This document shows positions 170-18,604 of a stretch of DNA of 18,604 bases, one piece after another. The position numbers and the translations under genes were made by a program. Numbering within the stretch: the stretch's first letter is position 1; each line of letters opens with the position of its first letter. This DNA is from Octopus sinensis (lineage: Eukaryota): contig NW_021824418.1 in assembly GCF_006345805.1 (NCBI RefSeq), forward strand, positions 1-18,604, given 5' to 3'. The notes beneath the pieces are model-generated. The model was not told where the DNA came from and ran no database searches. It worked only from the letters and a program-made list of their open reading frames with translations.

Positions 170-397
170 TGATGAGGTCCTTAAAACCTTCCCCCCAAAA
201 AAATTAAAAAAAATTTTCTGCATTTTGGTTAAAATGAACAACTACGATGTCCTCGACTTACATGATGAGGTCCTTAAAACCTTCCTCCCAAAAAAAATTA
301 AAAAAAATTTTTCTGCATTTTGGTTAAAATGAACAACTACGATGTCCTCGACTTACATGATGAGGTCCTTAAAACCTTCCCCCTAAAAAAAAATTAA
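170..397 (+). repeat. About 2.4 units of the ~94-bp Helitron-internal tandem repeat
   Basis: TGATGAGGTCCTTAAAACCTTCC recurs at about 170, 263 and 359; same unit as the 7866-8751 array. Confidence 0.9.
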
Positions 398-402
398 ACC
401 GG

Positions 403-862
403 ATTGAATTTTTAAACTCCTTAGATCCCTCTGGAATGCCGAATCATCTTTTAAAGTTAAAGATAGGCGTTCCAGTGGTTTTATTACGAAATCTTGCGCC
501 ACCTAAATTATGCAACGGAACGAGGTTAGTTATCAAAAATTTGATGGCTAACGTAATAGAGGCGACGATATTAACAGGTAAGTATAGAGGTGAGGATGTT
601 TATATTCCACGAATTCCGATAATTTCTGATGAATTACCATTTAGATTTAAAAGGCTGCAATTTCCTTTGAGGATGAGTTTTGCAATGACAATAAACAAGG
701 CCCAGGGACAGTCATTAAAGGTAGTTGGGTTATTTTTAGAGAGTGAGTGCTTTTCACATGGACAGCTGTATGTGGGATGCTCGAGGGTAGGCAGAAGAGA
801 AAATTTTATATGCCAAGGAAGGACGGACGACAAACATCGTTTATCAACAGGCGATAGAATAG
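403..862 (+). pseudogene. Helitron RepHel PIF1-type helicase, C-terminal fragment (frameshifted near its end)
   Basis: Reads [31 protein letters not shown]...LCNGTRL...[24 protein letters not shown]...[13 protein letters not shown], the classic PIF1/Helitron motifs. A 5-bp deletion relative to the 9531-9719 copy shifts the C-terminus out of frame. Confidence 0.9.
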
Positions 863-1027
863 GGTTACATTAAACCAGGTAGTTTTATACATCTACATAA
901 ACTTATAGTTGTTTGATGAAACAGGCCCTCCGCAGGAGCTAGGTCGCGGTGAGCGAAGCGAGCTGCCGAGCTAGTTATACATAAAAATATATTTATATGT
1001 GGAATAAAAATATATTTAAAGAAAAAT

Positions 1028-2593
1028 ATGTGGAATATTGACGATCATAAATCAAAAATAATTCATAAATTAATTGGAGAAATGATTGCAGTTAATTTAT
1101 TACCCTAATCATTTGTTGGTGATATTGGTTTCATTCGATTACTAAATCATATTATTCCAAATTATTGTATTCTCTCCAGAAAATATTTTTCGGAAAATAT
1201 TATTCCTGAAATTTTCAAAAATGTTAAAGCAACGATTACAAATGATATCGATTCTATCAAATTTTTGTCCCTGACAATTGATATTTGGACGGCTACCACA
1301 GCAAATAAACCTTTTCTTTGTATAACCGGACATTGGTTAACAGATTTATTTGCACAACAAAGAGTTTTGTTACGAGTTATTCCCTTGGAAGGTTCTCATA
1401 CATCTTCTAAGATTTGTGACGAGATAACTAATGTATTAGATGAATATAATCTGAAAAAAGAAATCATTTTTTTAATTTGAAGAGATTCTGCCCCAAACAT
1501 GATTGCTGGTGTAAGAAAGTCAGGAATCGAATCGCAATCTTGTTTTTTACATTCACTTCAATTATCAATAAATGAATCAATTTTTTCTCAAGAAGATGTC
1601 AAAAATATTATTAGTACTAGTCGGGATATTGTAAGCCATTTTAATCATTCTGCACTTGCAATTAGCAAATTAACTAACTTGCAAACTCAATTAAATCTGC
1701 CTGTCCATAAATTGAAACAAGATATTAATATCAGATGGAATTCTACTTATTACATGTTATCGAGAGTGATCGAACAACGAAAAGCTCCCGTAACATATGC
1801 AATTGATAATAATCTTTCAATATTATCAGATATACAGTGGATAACAGCAGAAAAAATTGTTAAAATTTTGAAACCATTTGAGGAAATAACAATTGAAGCG
1901 AGCAAAAGGAGTGCTACTGCTTCCATGATTATTCCTTCAATCAAAACAATTCTCTTATTTCTTGAAAAGGCAAAAGAATCTTGTGAATTTTATGAAATCA
2001 AAGAAACAATTGAAAAATTAATGTCCTCTATTGATAAAAGATTTACCTTTTATTTTGAAAACGAATCACTATGTATTACAACAACATTGGATCCCAGATT
2101 TAAAACAAGATTTCATAAGACTTGTATGATTGAAAGAATTTAAAAATTGATTGTTAAATATATGAAGGATAGTAATTCTCCTGACACGAAGTTATCTGAA
2201 AATGCCATTTCTTTGACAAAAATACAAAATTCGGAAACATTAACATTTGAAGAAATATTTTCTCAAATTTCATCTTCTAACCGAATTATGTCTATGGAGA
2301 AAAATTACCAACATTGCTATTTGACGGAACTTCAAAATTATTTAGAGCTAGATTTTATACCACGAACTGATAATATATTTACCTGGTGGAAGAACTTCAC
2401 GAATATATTTCCCCGCTTAAGTAAAATGGCGTTGAAATATTTAACAGCTCCTGCTTCGTCTGTAGAAAGCGAAAGAGTTTTCAGCACTGGAGGAAATATA
2501 TATCAACCGAAAAGAAATAGACTTTTGCCAGAGAATGGAGAAATGATGATGTACCTTCAATATAATTTAAAAACATTAGACTTTAATTATTGA
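1028..2593 (+). pseudogene. hAT-superfamily (ZBED1/ZBED4-like) transposase pseudogene, N-terminal BED region absent from the window
   Basis: One continuous frame broken by TAA 1106, TGA 1478 and TAA 2141. Motifs: WNIDD...IGEMIA, SLTIDIWT, RDSAPNM, CFLHSLQL, RWNSTYYML, LDPRFK, and the hAT dimerisation motif WWK...FPRLSKMALKYLTAPASSVESERVFSTGG. Confidence 0.92.
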
Positions 2594-3190: not shown

Positions 3191-3435
3191 TAATAAATTG
3201 TGAATAATCTAGCATAGAAGATCGAATTTGTGATTCTCCTTGTTTTTAAAGCTAAAACAGCCAAATTAAACTTCTCTGATTTGTCGGGCAAAAATTCTGT
3301 TTTTAAAAATTTTAAATGACCATAGCAACTTTCAAAATTGCATTTAACTAACAAATAGACCTATTAGTTCGAATATAAAAACCGTTCAGATATCTAATAA
3401 CGTCTTATTTTTTAAAAGTCTTAATTTTAGAATCT
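3191..3435 (+). repeat. ~245-bp repeat B, with a diverged inverted copy at 6182-6429
   Basis: Shared blocks such as GATCGAATTTGTGATTCTCC, TTTGTCGGGCAAAAA and AAAAACCGTT.AGATATCTAATAACGTCTTATTT occur reverse-complemented and in collinear order at 6182-6429. Confidence 0.85.
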
Positions 3436-6181: not shown

Positions 6182-6429
6182 AGATTCTAAAATTGGGTCT
6201 TTCAACAAATAAGACGTTATTAGATATCTCAACGGTTTTTATATTCGAATTATTAATTCTATTTGTTTGATAAATGCAATTTTGAAGGTTGCTATAGACA
6301 TTTAAAATTTTTTAAAAACATATGATTTTTGCCCGACAAATCACAGATGTTTAATTTAGCTGTTGTAGCTTTAAAAACTAGGAGAATCACAAATTCGATC
6401 ATCTATGCTAAATTATTCACAATTTATTA
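6182..6429 (-). repeat. Inverted copy of repeat B (3191-3435)
   Basis: Reverse-complement match with scattered substitutions. Confidence 0.85.
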
Positions 6430-7772: not shown

Positions 7773-7844
7773 GTGTGTGTCTGTCTGTCTGTCTGTCTGT
7801 GTGTCTGTCTTGTGTCTGTCTGTCTGTCTGTCTGTCTGTGTGTG
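7773..7844 (+). repeat. (CTGT)n/(GT)n microsatellite within the Helitron 5' end
   Basis: Directly visible; shorter versions lie at the same position in the copies at 1 and 4771. Confidence 0.95.
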
Positions 7845-7865
7845 CACACCAACTTCAAATTGGCA

Positions 7866-8751
7866 ATACGATGTCCTCGACTTACATGATGAGGTCCTTA
7901 AAACCTTCCCCCCAAAAAAATTAAAAAAAATTTTTCTGCGTTTTGGTCAAAATGAACAACTACGATGTCCTCGACTTACATGATGAGGTCCTTAAAACCT
8001 TCCCCCCAAAAAAATTAAAAAAAAATTTTTCTGCGTTTTGGTCAAAATGAACAACTACGATGTCCTCGACTTACATGATGAGGTCCTTAAAACCTTCCCC
8101 CCAAAAAAATTAAAAAAAAATTTTCTGCATTTTGGTTAAAATGAACAACTACGATGTCCTCGACTTACATGATGAGGTCCTTAAAACCTTCCCCCCAAAA
8201 AAATTAAAAAAAAATTTTCTGCATTTTGGTTAAAATGAATAACTACGATGTCCTCGACTTACATGATGAGGTCCTTAAACCTTCCCCCCAAAAAAATTAA
8301 AAAAAAATTTTCTGCATTTTGGTAAAATGAACAACTACGATGTCCTCGACTACATGATGAGGTCCTTAAAACTTCCCCCCAAAAAATTAAAAAAAAATTT
8401 TCTGCATTTTGGTTAAAATGAACAACTACAATGTCCTCGACTTACATGATGAGTCCTTAAAACCTTCCCCCCAAAAAAATTAAAAAAAAATTTTCTGCAT
8501 TTTGGTTAAAATGAATAACTACGATGTCCTCGACTTACATGATGAGGTCCTTAAAACCTTCCCCCCAAAAAAATTAAAAAAAAAATTTTCTGCATTTTGG
8601 TTAAAATGAACAACTACAATGTCCTCGACTTACATGATGAAGTCCTTAAAACCTTCCCCCCAAAAAAATTAAAAAAAAATTTTCTGCATTTTGGTTAAAA
8701 TGAACAACGCGAATGTCCTCGACATTCATGATGAGGTCCATTAAAACCTTC
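7866..8751 (+). repeat. Tandem array of a ~94-bp unit, 9 full copies plus a diverged partial copy
   Basis: TAC(G/A)ATGTCCTCGAC recurs at about 7867, 7961, 8056, 8150, 8244, 8336, 8427, 8520 and 8615, with a degenerate copy at about 8709. Units differ mainly in homopolymer lengths. Confidence 0.95.
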
Positions 8752-10755: not shown

Positions 10756-11256
10756 ATGGTAAAATAAATAATTTTATTTATTTATAATTAAATATTACTT
10801 ATAGTGTTAATAAAATAATACTTTTAGAACAGCAAACCATTCAAAATGTTAGTCGAAAACCAAATTCTAAGGAAAAGCGTGTGTACTACCTGTATAAAAA
10901 AACAGAAAATGGAGAATACGTACAGAATTGATGACTATGAAAAAATCGACAAAGATTTGATACAAAAAATAGTCTTTGATATTGTGAAACAAAAGCTTAA
11001 ACAACATGTTTACGACTACAATTCAAGCCGAGAAGTGACTAAAAATTTGAGCGACAACATTATGCAAAATGTAAAAAAAACCGTTTCCAAACGCTTCCGA
11101 GTGATAGTCTTAGTCACAATGGGGCAGATTTTTTCCAACGTCGTTATTTCTTCGGGCAATCTTGCTGAGTACAAAATTGATGAGACCGTGACAGCTACGA
11201 CTCAAAATGGAAACATATTTACCCACGTGATTATAAACCTTGTTTACAAAAATTAA
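10756..11256 (+). CDS. Tctex-1 family dynein light chain (TCTEX1D/Tctex2-like), paralogue 1
   Basis: Core 10909-11256: MENTY...IVFDIVKQKL...YD...KNLSDNIMQNVKK...RFRVIVLVTMGQ...D..V.A...NGNIF.HV fits the Tctex-1 pattern. The start is uncertain: a lone ATG exon (10756-10758) followed by a GTAAAA...TAG intron (10759-10827) is in frame and conserved in paralogue 2. Confidence 0.8.
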
Positions 11257-12535: not shown

Positions 12536-13020
12536 ATGGTAAAATAATTCGCTTAATATTTAAATATTAACTAATAAAATAATATTTTCAGAACAATAAA
12601 CCATTCAAACTGTTAATCAAAGACCAAATTCGAACGTTAAGTGTATGCAATAATTTTATGAAAAAACAGAAAATGGAAAATACATACAGAATTGACGACT
12701 ACGAAAAAATCGACAGAGAGTTAATACAGAAAATAGTCTTTAATATTATGGAAGAAGAGCTTAAAGAGCATGCTTACGACTACAATTCAAGCCCAGAAGT
12801 GATTAGAGATTTGAGTGACAAAATTATGCAAAATGTGAAAAAAAACGTTTCCAAACGCTTTCGAGTGATAGTCTTAGCCACCCTGGGGTGGATTTCTTCC
12901 AACGTCGTTATTTCGTCAGGCAATCTTGCTGAGTGTAAAATTGATGAGACCGTTACAGCTCGGACACAAAATGGGGACATATTTGCACACGTGATTATAA
13001 ATATTATTTATAAAAATTAA
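12536..13020 (+). CDS. Tctex-1 family dynein light chain, paralogue 2
   Basis: Core 12673-13020 is 90/115 aa identical (hand count) to paralogue 1. Same candidate ATG|GTAAAATAA first exon (12536-12538) with intron 12539-12591 in frame. Confidence 0.8.
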
Positions 13021-14853: not shown

Positions 14854-15729
14854 ATGGACCACAAACACGCCCAGAGACTATATAATAGATTATTTTGTTG
14901 TGCGAAGAAAATGGGTCGAACGATGATGGAATCGTTTAAAGCCAAATGGGTGAGAGTTTTGAGCAGTGTGAGTCCGGAGTACTACTCGGAGTACATTGGG
15001 TCAATTGTATTCTACTTTGGAGCACAAGGGAATTTTGCTACGTTTGTGAATGGACACGGAAGTTTTGCGACTCTGGTGTTCTCAACAGTCTGTGCTGTGC
15101 TCTTTGGACTGTACGTGGCTATGGCAAATGGTGGAGGCAATCTGTCAAGTGCGATCACAATGCCACTCTGTCTGGCCGGAAGAAAGTCGTGGAGAAAATT
15201 GCCGGGATATATGGTAGCACACTTTGTGGGAGCACTCACCGCCTGTTTGTGCAGTTATTGGTTATATCGTGACCAGTTCACGGCTGCCAACATGCCCACC
15301 GTCGCTATGATTCAAATGTACACGACGTACCCCGCCTCCCCAGGTGTCAGAGAGTCCACAATGTTCATGGAACAGTTCTTGGCTGCCTTTGGAGTTGTGT
15401 TTGGAGTCCTTGCAATTACCGACCCCAAGAACCCTGCCGAGTCGCCGGCCACACACGTGATTTCCATTTCGCTGATGGTTGGGGCACTACTTGGTAGTCT
15501 TGGGGCTTCGGGAGTGTTCATTCTTGTCCCTGACCTCGACATGGCAGGCCGGATCATTTCACTCATTTTTGCTGGCTCTGATGGTTGGACTGTTCTCGGC
15601 TCTCATTATTTCATCATCCCACAAATCTCCCTCTACACTGGTGGGCTGGCTGCGACCGTCATTTACAAACTCTTTATCGAATATCCTCGAGAAGGCAAGA
15701 CATCCAAGGTGGACGCCTGCGAACTGTAG
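14854..15729 (+). CDS. Divergent MIP-family channel, aquaglyceroporin (AQP3/7/9/10, GlpF-like) with non-canonical NPA boxes
   Basis: 291-aa ORF with six hydrophobic segments. Aquaglyceroporin hallmarks: EYIGS (TM1), W.KLPGY..A.F.GA, Y.D, YTTYP, EQFLAAF, AITDPKN, terminal IP...Y.GG..A..IY..FIE. The NPA boxes read NLSSA and LVPDLD. The exact start codon is uncertain. Confidence 0.88.
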   Translation: MDHKHAQRLYNRLFCCAKKMGRTMMESFKAKWVRVLSSVSPEYYSEYIGSIVFYFGAQGNFATFVNGHGSFATLVFSTVCAVLFGLYVAMANGGGNLSSAITMPLCLAGRKSWRKLPGYMVAHFVGALTACLCSYWLYRDQFTAANMPTVAMIQMYTTYPASPGVRESTMFMEQFLAAFGVVFGVLAITDPKNPAESPATHVISISLMVGALLGSLGASGVFILVPDLDMAGRIISLIFAGSDGWTVLGSHYFIIPQISLYTGGLAATVIYKLFIEYPREGKTSKVDACEL

Positions 15730-16299
15730 GCAATCCCTAATTTACTAACCTTTCTTAATAAGTGTATTTGAGACTTTCTATTCGAAAGAAGGGAATGTAA
15801 CATCGGAATTTAAGAGATAGATCTCAGTCAGATTTTTTAAAAGATTGATTGCTTATTATGTACTAAAAAGGCTTCTGAAGTGAGATGGGAAACATAAACA
15901 TTCTGAATACATCTTACTACGGCCAGGAGCGACATGCCATTGCTATGGTGCCTAGATGTATCGAAACAAGTCAAGTCATATATAAAGGACTTCTTTTATA
16001 TGAGAGGTAATCTACCGCTTTCTATTATCATTGCTGATATAGAGTTAAAAATTAAAAAACGATATGGAATTGTACAAAATCGGCTTTATTTAAGCTACTC
16101 TTTAAATAAGAATAAACAACAATATTAAAAAAATTACACGTATAAGATAACAGCCTTAAAAATGAAGGTTTGTTAAAATACTTACGAAGATTGACGATTT
16201 GAAATATTTGTTTGAAGTACTTTTAAAAATATAAAAATTTAAATTTGTAAAACCTATGTTACTTGGCATTGGCATATTTATTGTATTCGGTTTCTTATT

Positions 16300-17150: not shown

Positions 17151-18274
17151 GACCCAACCGTATCCCGGAAACGCCTTCTCTTCCTTCTGCAGAGCAACTC
17201 AATCGGTGTGTATTTCTTTATTAACCGACCAAAATTCCTCTGCAAGGGCCACCTTTTCCTTGAATGGGTTTCCCAGTTCCTTGCAGAAACGTAGGAAACC
17301 CTGTCCATTCCTCTGCGTCGCCTCCTCGGAAACAAGGCTGCCAACTGAGGTGTCAGTGTGGAGCATAATCTTCCTGCTGAGCGATTTCAAACGTTTCGCT
17401 TTCGAACAAGCAATTGCAAATCTCCAGGCTGAGCAGGCATACTCAACCGTCGGGGCAATCACTTGTTGGTAGACCTTGCTGACACAATCTTCCAGGGGAA
17501 AGGGACTCTTCTTTAACAGCGCTTTCAAGACGTTCCACTTCTGAAGACCTTTAGCTAAAACCTCCTCCACGTGACTTGAGAAAGTCATTAAGGAGTCGAA
17601 AACTACGCCAAGGATCTTCTGGGTACGCGAAGAGGGAATAGGTTTGTCTCCAATGAATAGTTCCAGTCCATCCTTGAATCTTCTATCAGTAGTGAAGAGG
17701 GTGAATTGGGATTTAGATGCAGACACACACAACATATTTGCAGATAGCCAATCACATACACGGTTGAGGTGTGACTGGACCATTGCAACAGCCACAGAAG
17801 GAGATTTATCTCTTGCAGCGATAATCAGGTCGTCCGCATAGAATAAGAACATACTGTCTAGGTCATTAGTAATAGGTAGGTCATGTAGAAATAGGTTAAA
17901 AAGGAGAGGAGATAAAAGGGAGCCTTGTGGGACACCATTGGGCAGTAGTCTTGATCTTGAAGTAGTATTGTCAATACGGACCCTTCCGCGTCGGCCAGTT
18001 AAGAAATTTTCCAACCACAGTTCGGATGTAAGTTCGAATCGAATATCTTCCGCGTTAGGAGTTTCGTCGGGACAGAATCAAAGGCTTTTTGTATATCGAT
18101 GGATACTAAGGCCATCCGTAGGTGTGTTCTCATGTTGAAACCGTCAGCAATAAACTGGGAGATAGAAGACAAATTGGTCGTTGTAGAACTATCTGGTCTA
18201 AAACTGTGCTGAAATTCTGACAATTGTAGAACAGGAGAGATTCGCGTTAATACAAACTTTTTCAATACTTTCGA
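17150..18274 (-). mobile_element. 5'-truncated non-LTR retrotransposon (LINE) reverse transcriptase fragment
   Basis: SKVLKKFV...FQHSFRP..ST...IDIQKAFDSV (18274-18000), a frameshift near 18010, then GVPQGSLLSPLLFNLF, FYADDL and KILGVVFDSLMTF. GC is visibly higher than the flanks. Clade not assignable by eye. Confidence 0.92.
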
Positions 18275-18604
18275 TAAAACACAAGTTTTTTTAGATAGCT
18301 ATATGATTATTATAAATAAATTCAAGAAAAGAATTTTAAATATATTATAATAAAATATTGGCACGTTGCTACTTATAATTCTTTTTGTTGTTGTTTATTG
18401 TTTAGGTTTATTTTCCAATGGTTAAAATTTGTCTTAAAATTGATTAAATATATTGTTGACTTACAGAATTTCTTATAATATTCGATATTTTGTAATTGAA
18501 TTGGTTTTTTTTCACAATAATTTAATCTTTTTTACATTTTAACTATTTAATATTGTTTTGACTCTTCTACAAACCATATTTCTTGACTATTTCTATATTT
18601 ATTG

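Follow-up and report, generated by a model that had tools for sequence, protein, structure and literature searches.

An open reading frame (ORF) encoding a protein of the MIP family, which comprises the aquaporins and aquaglyceroporins, was analysed in a stretch of 18,604 nucleotides (nt) from the Octopus sinensis assembly (NW_021824418.1). This stretch, referred to here as the window, is the entire unplaced contig C889 (18.6 kb) of a 2.72-Gb assembly of 13,516 sequences, and it is DNA of a dicyemid, a parasite of the cephalopod renal sac, which contaminates the octopus assembly. The protein has lost both asparagines of its two NPA motifs together with the arginine of the aromatic/arginine (ar/R) filter. 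Based on its sequence, its predicted fold and the likeness to the trypanosomal channel TbAQP2, the protein is proposed, with a probability of roughly 0.55, to be a working dicyemid aquaglyceroporin-type channel with an uncharged, hydrophobic filter and a reduced ability to keep out cations and protons. In the textbook account, aquaporins exclude protons and cations by means of the two asparagines and the arginine, and a natural MIP which lacks all three, and in which this state is constant between species, offers a ready-made test of that model.

Pore motifs of the window protein

The ORF product scored 40.4 bits with the Pfam MIP family (PF00230; cut-off 25, E 3.8e-10), and a HMMER scan of 1.84 billion representative proteins gave 697 MIP matches at E<1e-3. 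Its best relatives of solved structure by HMMER were aquaglyceroporins (GLPs), namely human AQP10 (6f7h, 2.4e-19) and TbAQP2 (8jy6, 1.1e-17), followed by AQP3 (9qsx) and AQP7 and then by PfAQP and GlpF; the top matches in the PDB were all GLPs, both by sequence and by fold. Traits of this subfamily are kept, including D229 after the filter position, MEQF aligned on the FDQF of eukaryotic GLPs, the LY-x-D motif and the acidic-Gln (EQ) pair of transmembrane helix (TM) 4. The reading of the ORF as a pseudogene or a product of chance is all but ruled out.

The motifs were aligned by HMMER (pairwise) and by MAFFT, the latter with 35 sequences in which the window protein stood with 33 other MIPs; residues are given in ORF numbering. 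Both methods placed GGGNLSSAIT of loop B on SGxHLNPAVT and FILVPDLD of loop E on YAINPARD. In the pairwise alignments GGNLSSAIT was found on SGAHLNPAFS of AQP10 and GGHLNSAVT of TbAQP2, and LVPDLD on LNPARD and MNPSLD, respectively. Loop B has serine in place of asparagine (S98) and of proline (S99), with A100 retained and N96 and L97 preceding, and loop E has V225 for asparagine, D227 for alanine and L228 for arginine, with P226 and D229 retained. At the near-invariant positions H73, N75, P76, N202, A204 and R205 of the MAFFT alignment the window protein has N, S, S, V, D and L, respectively, and the survivors of the two NPA signatures are the second proline and the first alanine. The ar/R set is T78/L213/F222/L228, in which the LE1 residue (F222) alone is typical of aquaglyceroporins.

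A previous sequence-only reading of the window had proposed the change of NPA to SSA, that of NPAR to VPDL with the aspartate kept, and a threonine at the TM2 filter position. The first two were confirmed by HMMER, by MAFFT and by the position of the half-helices in the AlphaFold model described below, and the threonine is T78 in the MAFFT and TbAQP2 alignments. A displaced canonical motif was also sought by proper alignment and rejected: the sole NPA tripeptide (KNPAE) is located in cytoplasmic loop D, between TM4 and TM5, which is not re-entrant, and since it stands outside the re-entrant loops no canonical NPA is hidden elsewhere in the protein.

In MIPs the TM3 glutamine forms a hydrogen bond with the third residue of the loop E motif, the pair in TbAQP2 being S263-Q155 (PMC12803511). 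The histidine found at this position (H123) is invariant in all three dicyemid-type proteins of this study, and by pairing with D227, or with N, it may make up for the altered contact.

A search of 5.8 billion proteins revealed one close relative, the aquaglyceroporin of Dicyema japonicum (UniProt B9ZYV3, 273 aa), which is colinear with the window protein at 72-74% identity and carries identical GGGNLSSAIT and FILVPDLD motifs. It shares L/F/L at H5/LE1/LE2, and the sole difference in the filter is Ile at TM2 (Thr here). B9ZYV3 is almost certainly, as judged from these alignments, the orthologue in another dicyemid species. Identical runs of 24 residues (TM2-loop B), 23 residues (TM4) and 32 residues (TM5-loop E) were observed between the two proteins, and the termini and loop C have 30-60% identity. 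Beyond B9ZYV3 no protein of more than 33% identity was found in the full HMMER scan of the 1.84 billion representatives, and the exact window proteins were absent from a collection of 15 billion proteins and are therefore apparently unannotated.

The comparison with B9ZYV3 also bears on the limits of the gene. The GC content is 50% in the coding sequence (CDS) from 14911, 37% in the 57 nt at 14854-14910 and 29% in the flanks. On account of this low GC content and of a TATATAA within these first 57 nt, the opening 19-23 codons of the ORF probably lie outside the coding region, and the real start would be the ATG at 14911 or 14923. The ATG at 14911 has the context aaaATGg, and the alignment to the D. 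japonicum protein begins there. A tiny in-frame intron within the ORF was ruled out by colinearity with that protein, the sole indels in the global alignment being 1 aa at the N-terminus and 2 aa near the C-terminus. The C-terminus itself reads KVDACEL (15706-15726), of which KVDAC-x-L is kept in both dicyemid species while the preceding tail has diverged; a paralogue on contig C8318 likewise terminates in QL. KVDAC-x-L may be a motif for trafficking or for PDZ-type interaction.

The AlphaFold2 model (268 aa), for which the MAFFT alignment served as input, has a pLDDT of 86.3 and a pTM of 0.84, with six long helices in the expected order and half-helices at model residues 76-84 and 203-217. 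Of the re-entrant helices, one has its exact start at the second Ser of SSA, the other at the Pro (P226) of VPD. In Foldseek searches against the PDB the leading matches were AQP3, AQP10, AQP7 and TbAQP2 (TM-scores 0.78-0.89, about 2.1 Å); with GlpF included the TM-scores were 0.77-0.89. In the model the hourglass fold of six TMs and two half-helices is present. The carbonyl ladder of loop B (G94-G95-N96-L97, i.e. G-G-x-L) is kept, as are the TM1 Glu and the TM4 Glu-Gln pair, and V82, L86, M90, V181, V185, I205 and V209, which align to the glycerol and drug contacts of TbAQP2, are conservatively hydrophobic.

For comparison, 205 MIPs were collected from two protein searches, one of them over the 1.84 billion representatives. 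NPA was present in loop B of 170 and in loop E of 159 of these, and the filter Arg in 186; the combined loss of both Asn and the Arg was restricted to the dicyemid proteins. AQP11/12 and the plant SIPs are MIPs with degenerate NPA motifs. Other NPA-degenerate MIPs, such as PfAQP (NLA/NPS) and one from Phytophthora, deviate in one or both loops, but those compared keep the filter Arg. Among them the oomycete MIP Phytophthora boehmeriae KAG7398338 (P0060; IIS/SPN) has, like the window protein, lost both Asn, but its Arg is kept. AQP3/7/9/10 and GlpF were the best matches in sequence and structure (AQP3 fold match: TM 0.80-0.85, rmsd 2.1 Å) and share the Asp after the filter, the TM4 acidic-Gln pair, the LE1 Phe and LY-x-D; they differ in having NPA/NPA with a filter of W or F/G/Y or F/R, where the window protein has SSA/VPD with T/L/F/L.

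TbAQP2 (8jy6, 8ofx) has non-canonical NSA/NPS motifs and an Ile/Val/Leu/Leu filter, in which Leu likewise stands for Arg and the Asp is kept, and its fold matched that of the window protein with a TM-score of 0.80-0.89 at a sequence identity of only 22-24%. Unlike the window protein, which has neither, TbAQP2 keeps both Asn. An aliphatic, uncharged ar/R set in which Leu replaces Arg and TM2 contributes no aromatic residue is found as T/L/F/L in the window protein and as I/L/F/L in D. japonicum. The analogy to TbAQP2 drawn by the sequence-only reading is apt, the whole ar/R set being aliphatic or uncharged and the TM2 residue of D. japonicum being Ile as in TbAQP2. In TbAQP2, residues I110, L258 and L264 are each needed for the entry of pentamidine, which is abolished by L264R, and dicationic drug entry is lost on restoring Trp, Tyr or Arg singly (PMC7473772, PMC12803511); glycerol is still carried (PMC12803511). 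The permeability of TbAQP2 to large cationic drugs has been measured, whereas the window protein is known here from its sequence and predicted fold. Because in the free tree T. congolense AQP3 (P0059), the sole match named trypanosomal, is not a neighbour of the dicyemid clade, convergence is likelier than homology of the change. The dicyemid filter would then be a second, probably independent, aliphatic Arg-free filter beside that of TbAQP2.

No paper on B9ZYV3 or its motifs was found in a literature search, nor one joining dicyemids with an aquaglyceroporin, the matches to dicyemid plus aquaporin being unrelated; aquaporins are not mentioned in the dicyemid genome papers. The gene had been ranked by the sequence-only reading as the strongest candidate for new biology in the window. 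No description of the filter was found, but the protein type is already public under a generic name, B9ZYV3 being deposited as 'aquaglyceroporin'.

Proposed function and alternatives

The hallmarks of an open path are kept while the elements which exclude charge are changed, and a conducting channel of relaxed selectivity is therefore the most likely reading. We infer the open pore and its conducted solutes by analogy to TbAQP2. In the proposed mechanism the electrostatic and size filters would have been rebuilt, with Ser and Val in place of Asn at the pore centre and a Thr/Leu/Phe/Leu constriction without Arg. The acidic D227 and D229 would remain beside the former Arg site, and the charge next to the constriction would change from Arg plus Asp (neutral) to Leu plus Asp, with an extra Asp starting the half-helix of loop E. 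Such a pore would still pass small neutral solutes (water, glycerol, urea, ammonia), and its barrier to cationic or bulkier solutes, possibly including protons, would be much weaker. Removal of the Arg or Asn in other aquaporins reportedly gives proton or cation leaks, as described by Beitz, Wu, Wree and colleagues. Wree 2011, a part of that mutagenesis work, is cited in PMC7473772. Dicyemids have no gut and take up nutrients from the urine of the host via ciliated peripheral cells (PMC6736024), and a relaxed-selectivity channel therefore has an obvious use in them. The channel would suit a gutless animal which lives in and feeds from host urine, as a candidate route of solute exchange across its only surface.

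Several points weigh against this reading. Leu stands at H5 for the Gly of aquaglyceroporins and Val for the Asn of loop E, and the two changes combined could close the pore by narrowing or dewetting it. The dipoles of the half-helices remain, and some barrier to cations may persist. D227 may be buried against H123 and not face the pore. The 4:1 count of synonymous to non-synonymous changes reported below comprises five changes only, three of which are at CpG sites.

The main rival, because the TM5 Gly to Leu and the Asn to Val changes add bulk, is a protein which keeps the MIP fold without conduction, Leu213, Phe222, Leu228 and Val225 forming a hydrophobic plug. It would act in membrane adhesion or scaffolding, as a regulatory partner or as an intracellular 'unorthodox' aquaporin; we consider this unlikely. 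The same two changes, at H5 and at the pore centre, also remove polarity, and the strongly conserved C-terminal KVDAC-x-L is a possible motif for protein interaction. Weak or non-transport roles are found in other MIPs whose motifs deviate, namely AQP11/12, the plant SIPs, Big Brain and AQP0. However, it is precisely the segments forming the pore, with the loop B carbonyl ladder among them, that are most strongly conserved, while the changes of W to T at TM2 and of N to S in loop B remove bulk, and TbAQP2, with an equally aliphatic filter, is open and unusually permissive.

The protein might also be an ordinary water/glycerol facilitator, in which the substitutions are drift tolerated in a rapidly evolving lineage of parasites, Ser98 still caps the half-helix and no new selectivity has arisen. 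This alternative, to which we give a low probability, is favoured by the very long branches of the dicyemid proteins (stem about 1.0), by serine being a good helix N-cap and by the retention of Asp229, the TM4 EQ pair and LY-x-D, as well as by the glycerol transport of TbAQP2. On the other hand, two species whose proteins share 74% identity have the same changes in fixed form, a pattern that speaks for selection rather than drift; and unchanged selectivity would be unexpected, because the removal of Arg or Asn is said to make other aquaporins leak protons or cations.

Constraint on the gene and dicyemid origin of the contig

A second copy of the locus was identified on contig C10950, which is colinear with the window over at least 17 kb apart from transposon indels. 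The two ORFs differ by four synonymous and one non-synonymous changes in 876 nt (0.57%), and the flanks of the two copies by about 2.3-4%, substitutions in the ORF being about 4-fold rarer. The intact ORF of the sequence-only reading is borne out by the identical motifs, by the runs of 24, 23 and 32 residues and by the 4:1 count, and these data support a gene which is intact and constrained. In the C10950 copy two 1-nt deletions in homopolymers (CCC to CC and GG to G) shift the frame after residue 254; they are probably long-read errors and could be a real null allele.

That the gene is a dead or dying copy, a young pseudogene with a chance open frame or an assembly artefact is highly improbable and has been largely refuted: the frameshifts near the C-terminus of the C10950 copy, a contig full of transposons and the absence of the exact protein from the 15-billion-protein collection would suit it, but the frame of the window copy is open throughout and collinear with the D. 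japonicum protein, with identical motifs and pore segments, homopolymer deletions are typical of long-read error, and most of the substitutions are synonymous, their rate being lower than that of the flanks.

The origin of the contig from a dicyemid parasite had not been recognised in the sequence-only reading. The closest relative of the window protein is from a dicyemid (74% identity), compared to 24-27% for the host aquaglyceroporin. The COX1 encoded by the mitochondrial contig (C13516) matches the protein of O. sinensis and of the Japanese 'O. vulgaris' exactly, and the nominal organism is therefore the East Asian common octopus. This octopus is the natural host of D. japonicum and of other dicyemids. 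Copies of the reverse transcriptase and hAT elements of the window were all located on unplaced contigs, and a whole-genome search found no reverse transcriptase copies on the large numbered sequences bearing multi-exon genes of the host. Contigs C8702, C1794, C8459 and C6303 carry the retroelement of the window plus compact CCT/HSP60 genes, in which the 490-position domain occupies about 1.5 kb with few stops between, whereas the host copies exceed 10 kb. Similarly, the PGK gene on the unplaced contig C13496 has about 10 GT..AG introns of about 20-28 nt, while host PGK on C13 spans 10.6 kb. Introns shorter than 30 nt are known among animals from dicyemids and myxobolid myxozoans only (PMC13644364), and for D. 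japonicum Lu et al. reported introns averaging 38 bp, repeats at 49% and numerous ORF2 copies from LINEs (long interspersed nuclear elements) (PMC6736024). No match was obtained by blastn of 43.5 kb of parasite-type DNA against a 54.7-kb sample of host chromosomal sequence. A repeat of about 230-330 nt, resembling a SINE (short interspersed nuclear element), was common to six of eight host loci and to C2441, an unplaced contig of the host.

That the gene truly belongs to the octopus, for instance as one horizontally transferred from or shared with dicyemids, is very hard to credit in place of contamination: the host protein XP_029642182 also has Leu for the filter Arg, and a clade of the dicyemid AQPs and this protein was not rejected by the approximately unbiased (AU) test (p 0.81), but its identity to the window protein is only a third or so of the 74% shared with D. 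japonicum, the contig is unplaced and carries no host repeat, and its mobile elements are confined to unplaced contigs with tiny-intron genes.

Because the identity to D. japonicum is only 74%, the sequenced octopus apparently carried a dicyemid species other than D. japonicum. Near-duplicate contigs were observed in two pairs, C889/C10950 (96.5-97.6% identity) and C12467/C8901, which suggests two haplotypes or strains. Unplaced contigs attributed to the dicyemid include C10950, C8318, C13496, C1794, C8459, C8702 and C6303, and some exceed 1 Mb. The Octopus sinensis reference thus holds many unplaced dicyemid contigs, which should be masked in studies of gene families, transposons and horizontal transfer; at the same time they provide, at no cost, long-read data on a second dicyemid genome.

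Related channels and further features of the window

The assembly was found to hold three dicyemid-type MIP loci only, i.e. the window gene, its twin on C10950 and the paralogue on C8318. The latter (C8318:259801-260589) is intronless, encodes 262 aa and is 33% identical to the window protein. Its motifs are GGGQLNSAVT (NSA) in loop B and TIHPNLD (HPN-L-D) in loop E, and its filter is Ile/Leu/Leu/Leu by hand count; NSA with this filter is very close to the NSA and Ile/Val/Leu/Leu of TbAQP2. The search for orthologues and paralogues with the same substitutions, which the sequence-only reading had advised, thus yielded identical motifs in B9ZYV3 and the NSA/HPN-L-D variant here. The three dicyemid proteins form one clade (support 100/99) on a long stem (about 1.0); the deep nodes of the tree were weak and free tree searches unstable.

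Among the MIPs of the assembly none with canonical NPA/NPA-Arg was assignable to the parasite, whose genome is possibly incompletely represented there. The canonical MIP on C2441 was rejected as a parasite gene, since the SINE-like repeat of the host is present on that contig and marks it as host DNA. Contig C12834 carries an NPA-bearing exon at its edge, with FNPAMATG and no Arg after the motif. Of the exclusion elements, one dicyemid type lacks both Asn and the Arg, whereas the other lacks the Arg and only the second Asn. Cephalopod urine is rich in ammonium. It is conceivable, though we consider it rather doubtful, that dicyemids have converted their whole MIP complement to channels without canonical exclusion elements, conducting ammonium, protons or organic cations in addition to neutral solutes, as an adaptation to nutrient uptake and nitrogen handling in cephalopod urine. 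If true, this would be a natural knock-out of both MIP selectivity filters which has been kept by selection.

The host itself encodes aquaporin-8/9-like proteins, XP_029642182/XP_029642181 (P0068/P0220), on a 105.9-Mb record, i.e. a chromosome-scale scaffold. As in the window protein, Leu takes the place of the filter Arg (VNPALD) and a small residue occupies the TM2 filter position (Ser by hand count); in contrast to it, both NPA motifs are kept. Transfer of the gene from the host was ruled out, the identity being 24-27% only. Cluster P0063 combines NPT/NPA with Leu for Arg. In free trees the Leu-bearing proteins of the host and P0063 were separated from the dicyemid clade. A tree constrained to unite them had a likelihood higher by 35-76 log units and was not rejected (p-AU 0.81-0.97). 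Arg may therefore have given way to Leu in a lineage of spiralian aquaglyceroporins before dicyemids arose, the losses of the Asn following afterwards.

The coordinates of the gene, its altered residues and the mobile elements of the contig are collected in Table 1.

Table 1. Features located in the window (coordinates refer to the whole stretch of 18,604 nt)
Feature	Position	Strand	Remarks
MIP/aquaglyceroporin ORF	14854..15729	+	Single open frame; 291 aa/codons including upstream extension
Probable true CDS	14911..15729	+	272 aa; alternative start 14923; intronless, colinear with D. japonicum protein
TATATAA, possible core promoter element	14879..14885	+	Inside the first codons of the ORF; judged from sequence only
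T78, TM2 (H2) ar/R position	15085..15087	+	W48 in GlpF, I110 in TbAQP2, Ile in D. japonicum
SSA replacing NPA (S98 S99 A100), loop B	15145..15153	+	Codons TCA AGT GCG; S98 N-caps half-helix HB
H123, TM3	15220..15222	+	Replaces near-universal Gln; aligns to TbAQP2 Q155
L213, TM5 (H5) ar/R position	15490..15492	+	Gly in most aquaglyceroporins, V249 in TbAQP2
F222, LE1 ar/R position	15517..15519	+	F200 in GlpF, L258 in TbAQP2
VPD-L-D replacing NPA-R-D (V225 P226 D227 L228 D229), loop E	15526..15540	+	Codons GTC CCT GAC CTC GAC
AATAAG, possible polyadenylation signal	15757..15762	+	28 nt past the stop codon; a call made on the letters alone
Pif1-type helicase fragment (Helitron-like)	373-873	+	
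hAT transposase, stop-interrupted	1109-2593	+	26 copies, 94-100% identity, some 99-100%
LINE-type reverse transcriptase	17199-18298	-	At least 40 copies, 89-95% identity

Two tandem, intronless genes for dynein light chains of the Tctex-1 family were observed at 10846-11256 and 12658-13020 (plus strand), 78% identical in protein and 85% in DNA over 300 nt. Multicopy clusters of dynein-complex genes have been described in D. japonicum (Lu et al. 2019, PMC6736024).

A satellite of about 94 nt forms two blocks in the window, at 7800-8750 and 176-468. Dispersed duplications of 91-100% identity were found within the contig at 3769-4068/7361-7660, 4164-4771/9829-10442 and 679-975/9531-9832, and inverted repeats at 3191-3435 and 6182-6429.

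Elsewhere in the assembly, a further COX1 copy is located at C1425:413645-414982, on an unplaced nuclear contig, with a score equal to that of the mitochondrial C13516 copy; it is either a very recent nuclear copy of mitochondrial DNA (NUMT) or mis-joined mitochondrial DNA. Many older NUMT fragments were present on the host chromosomes.

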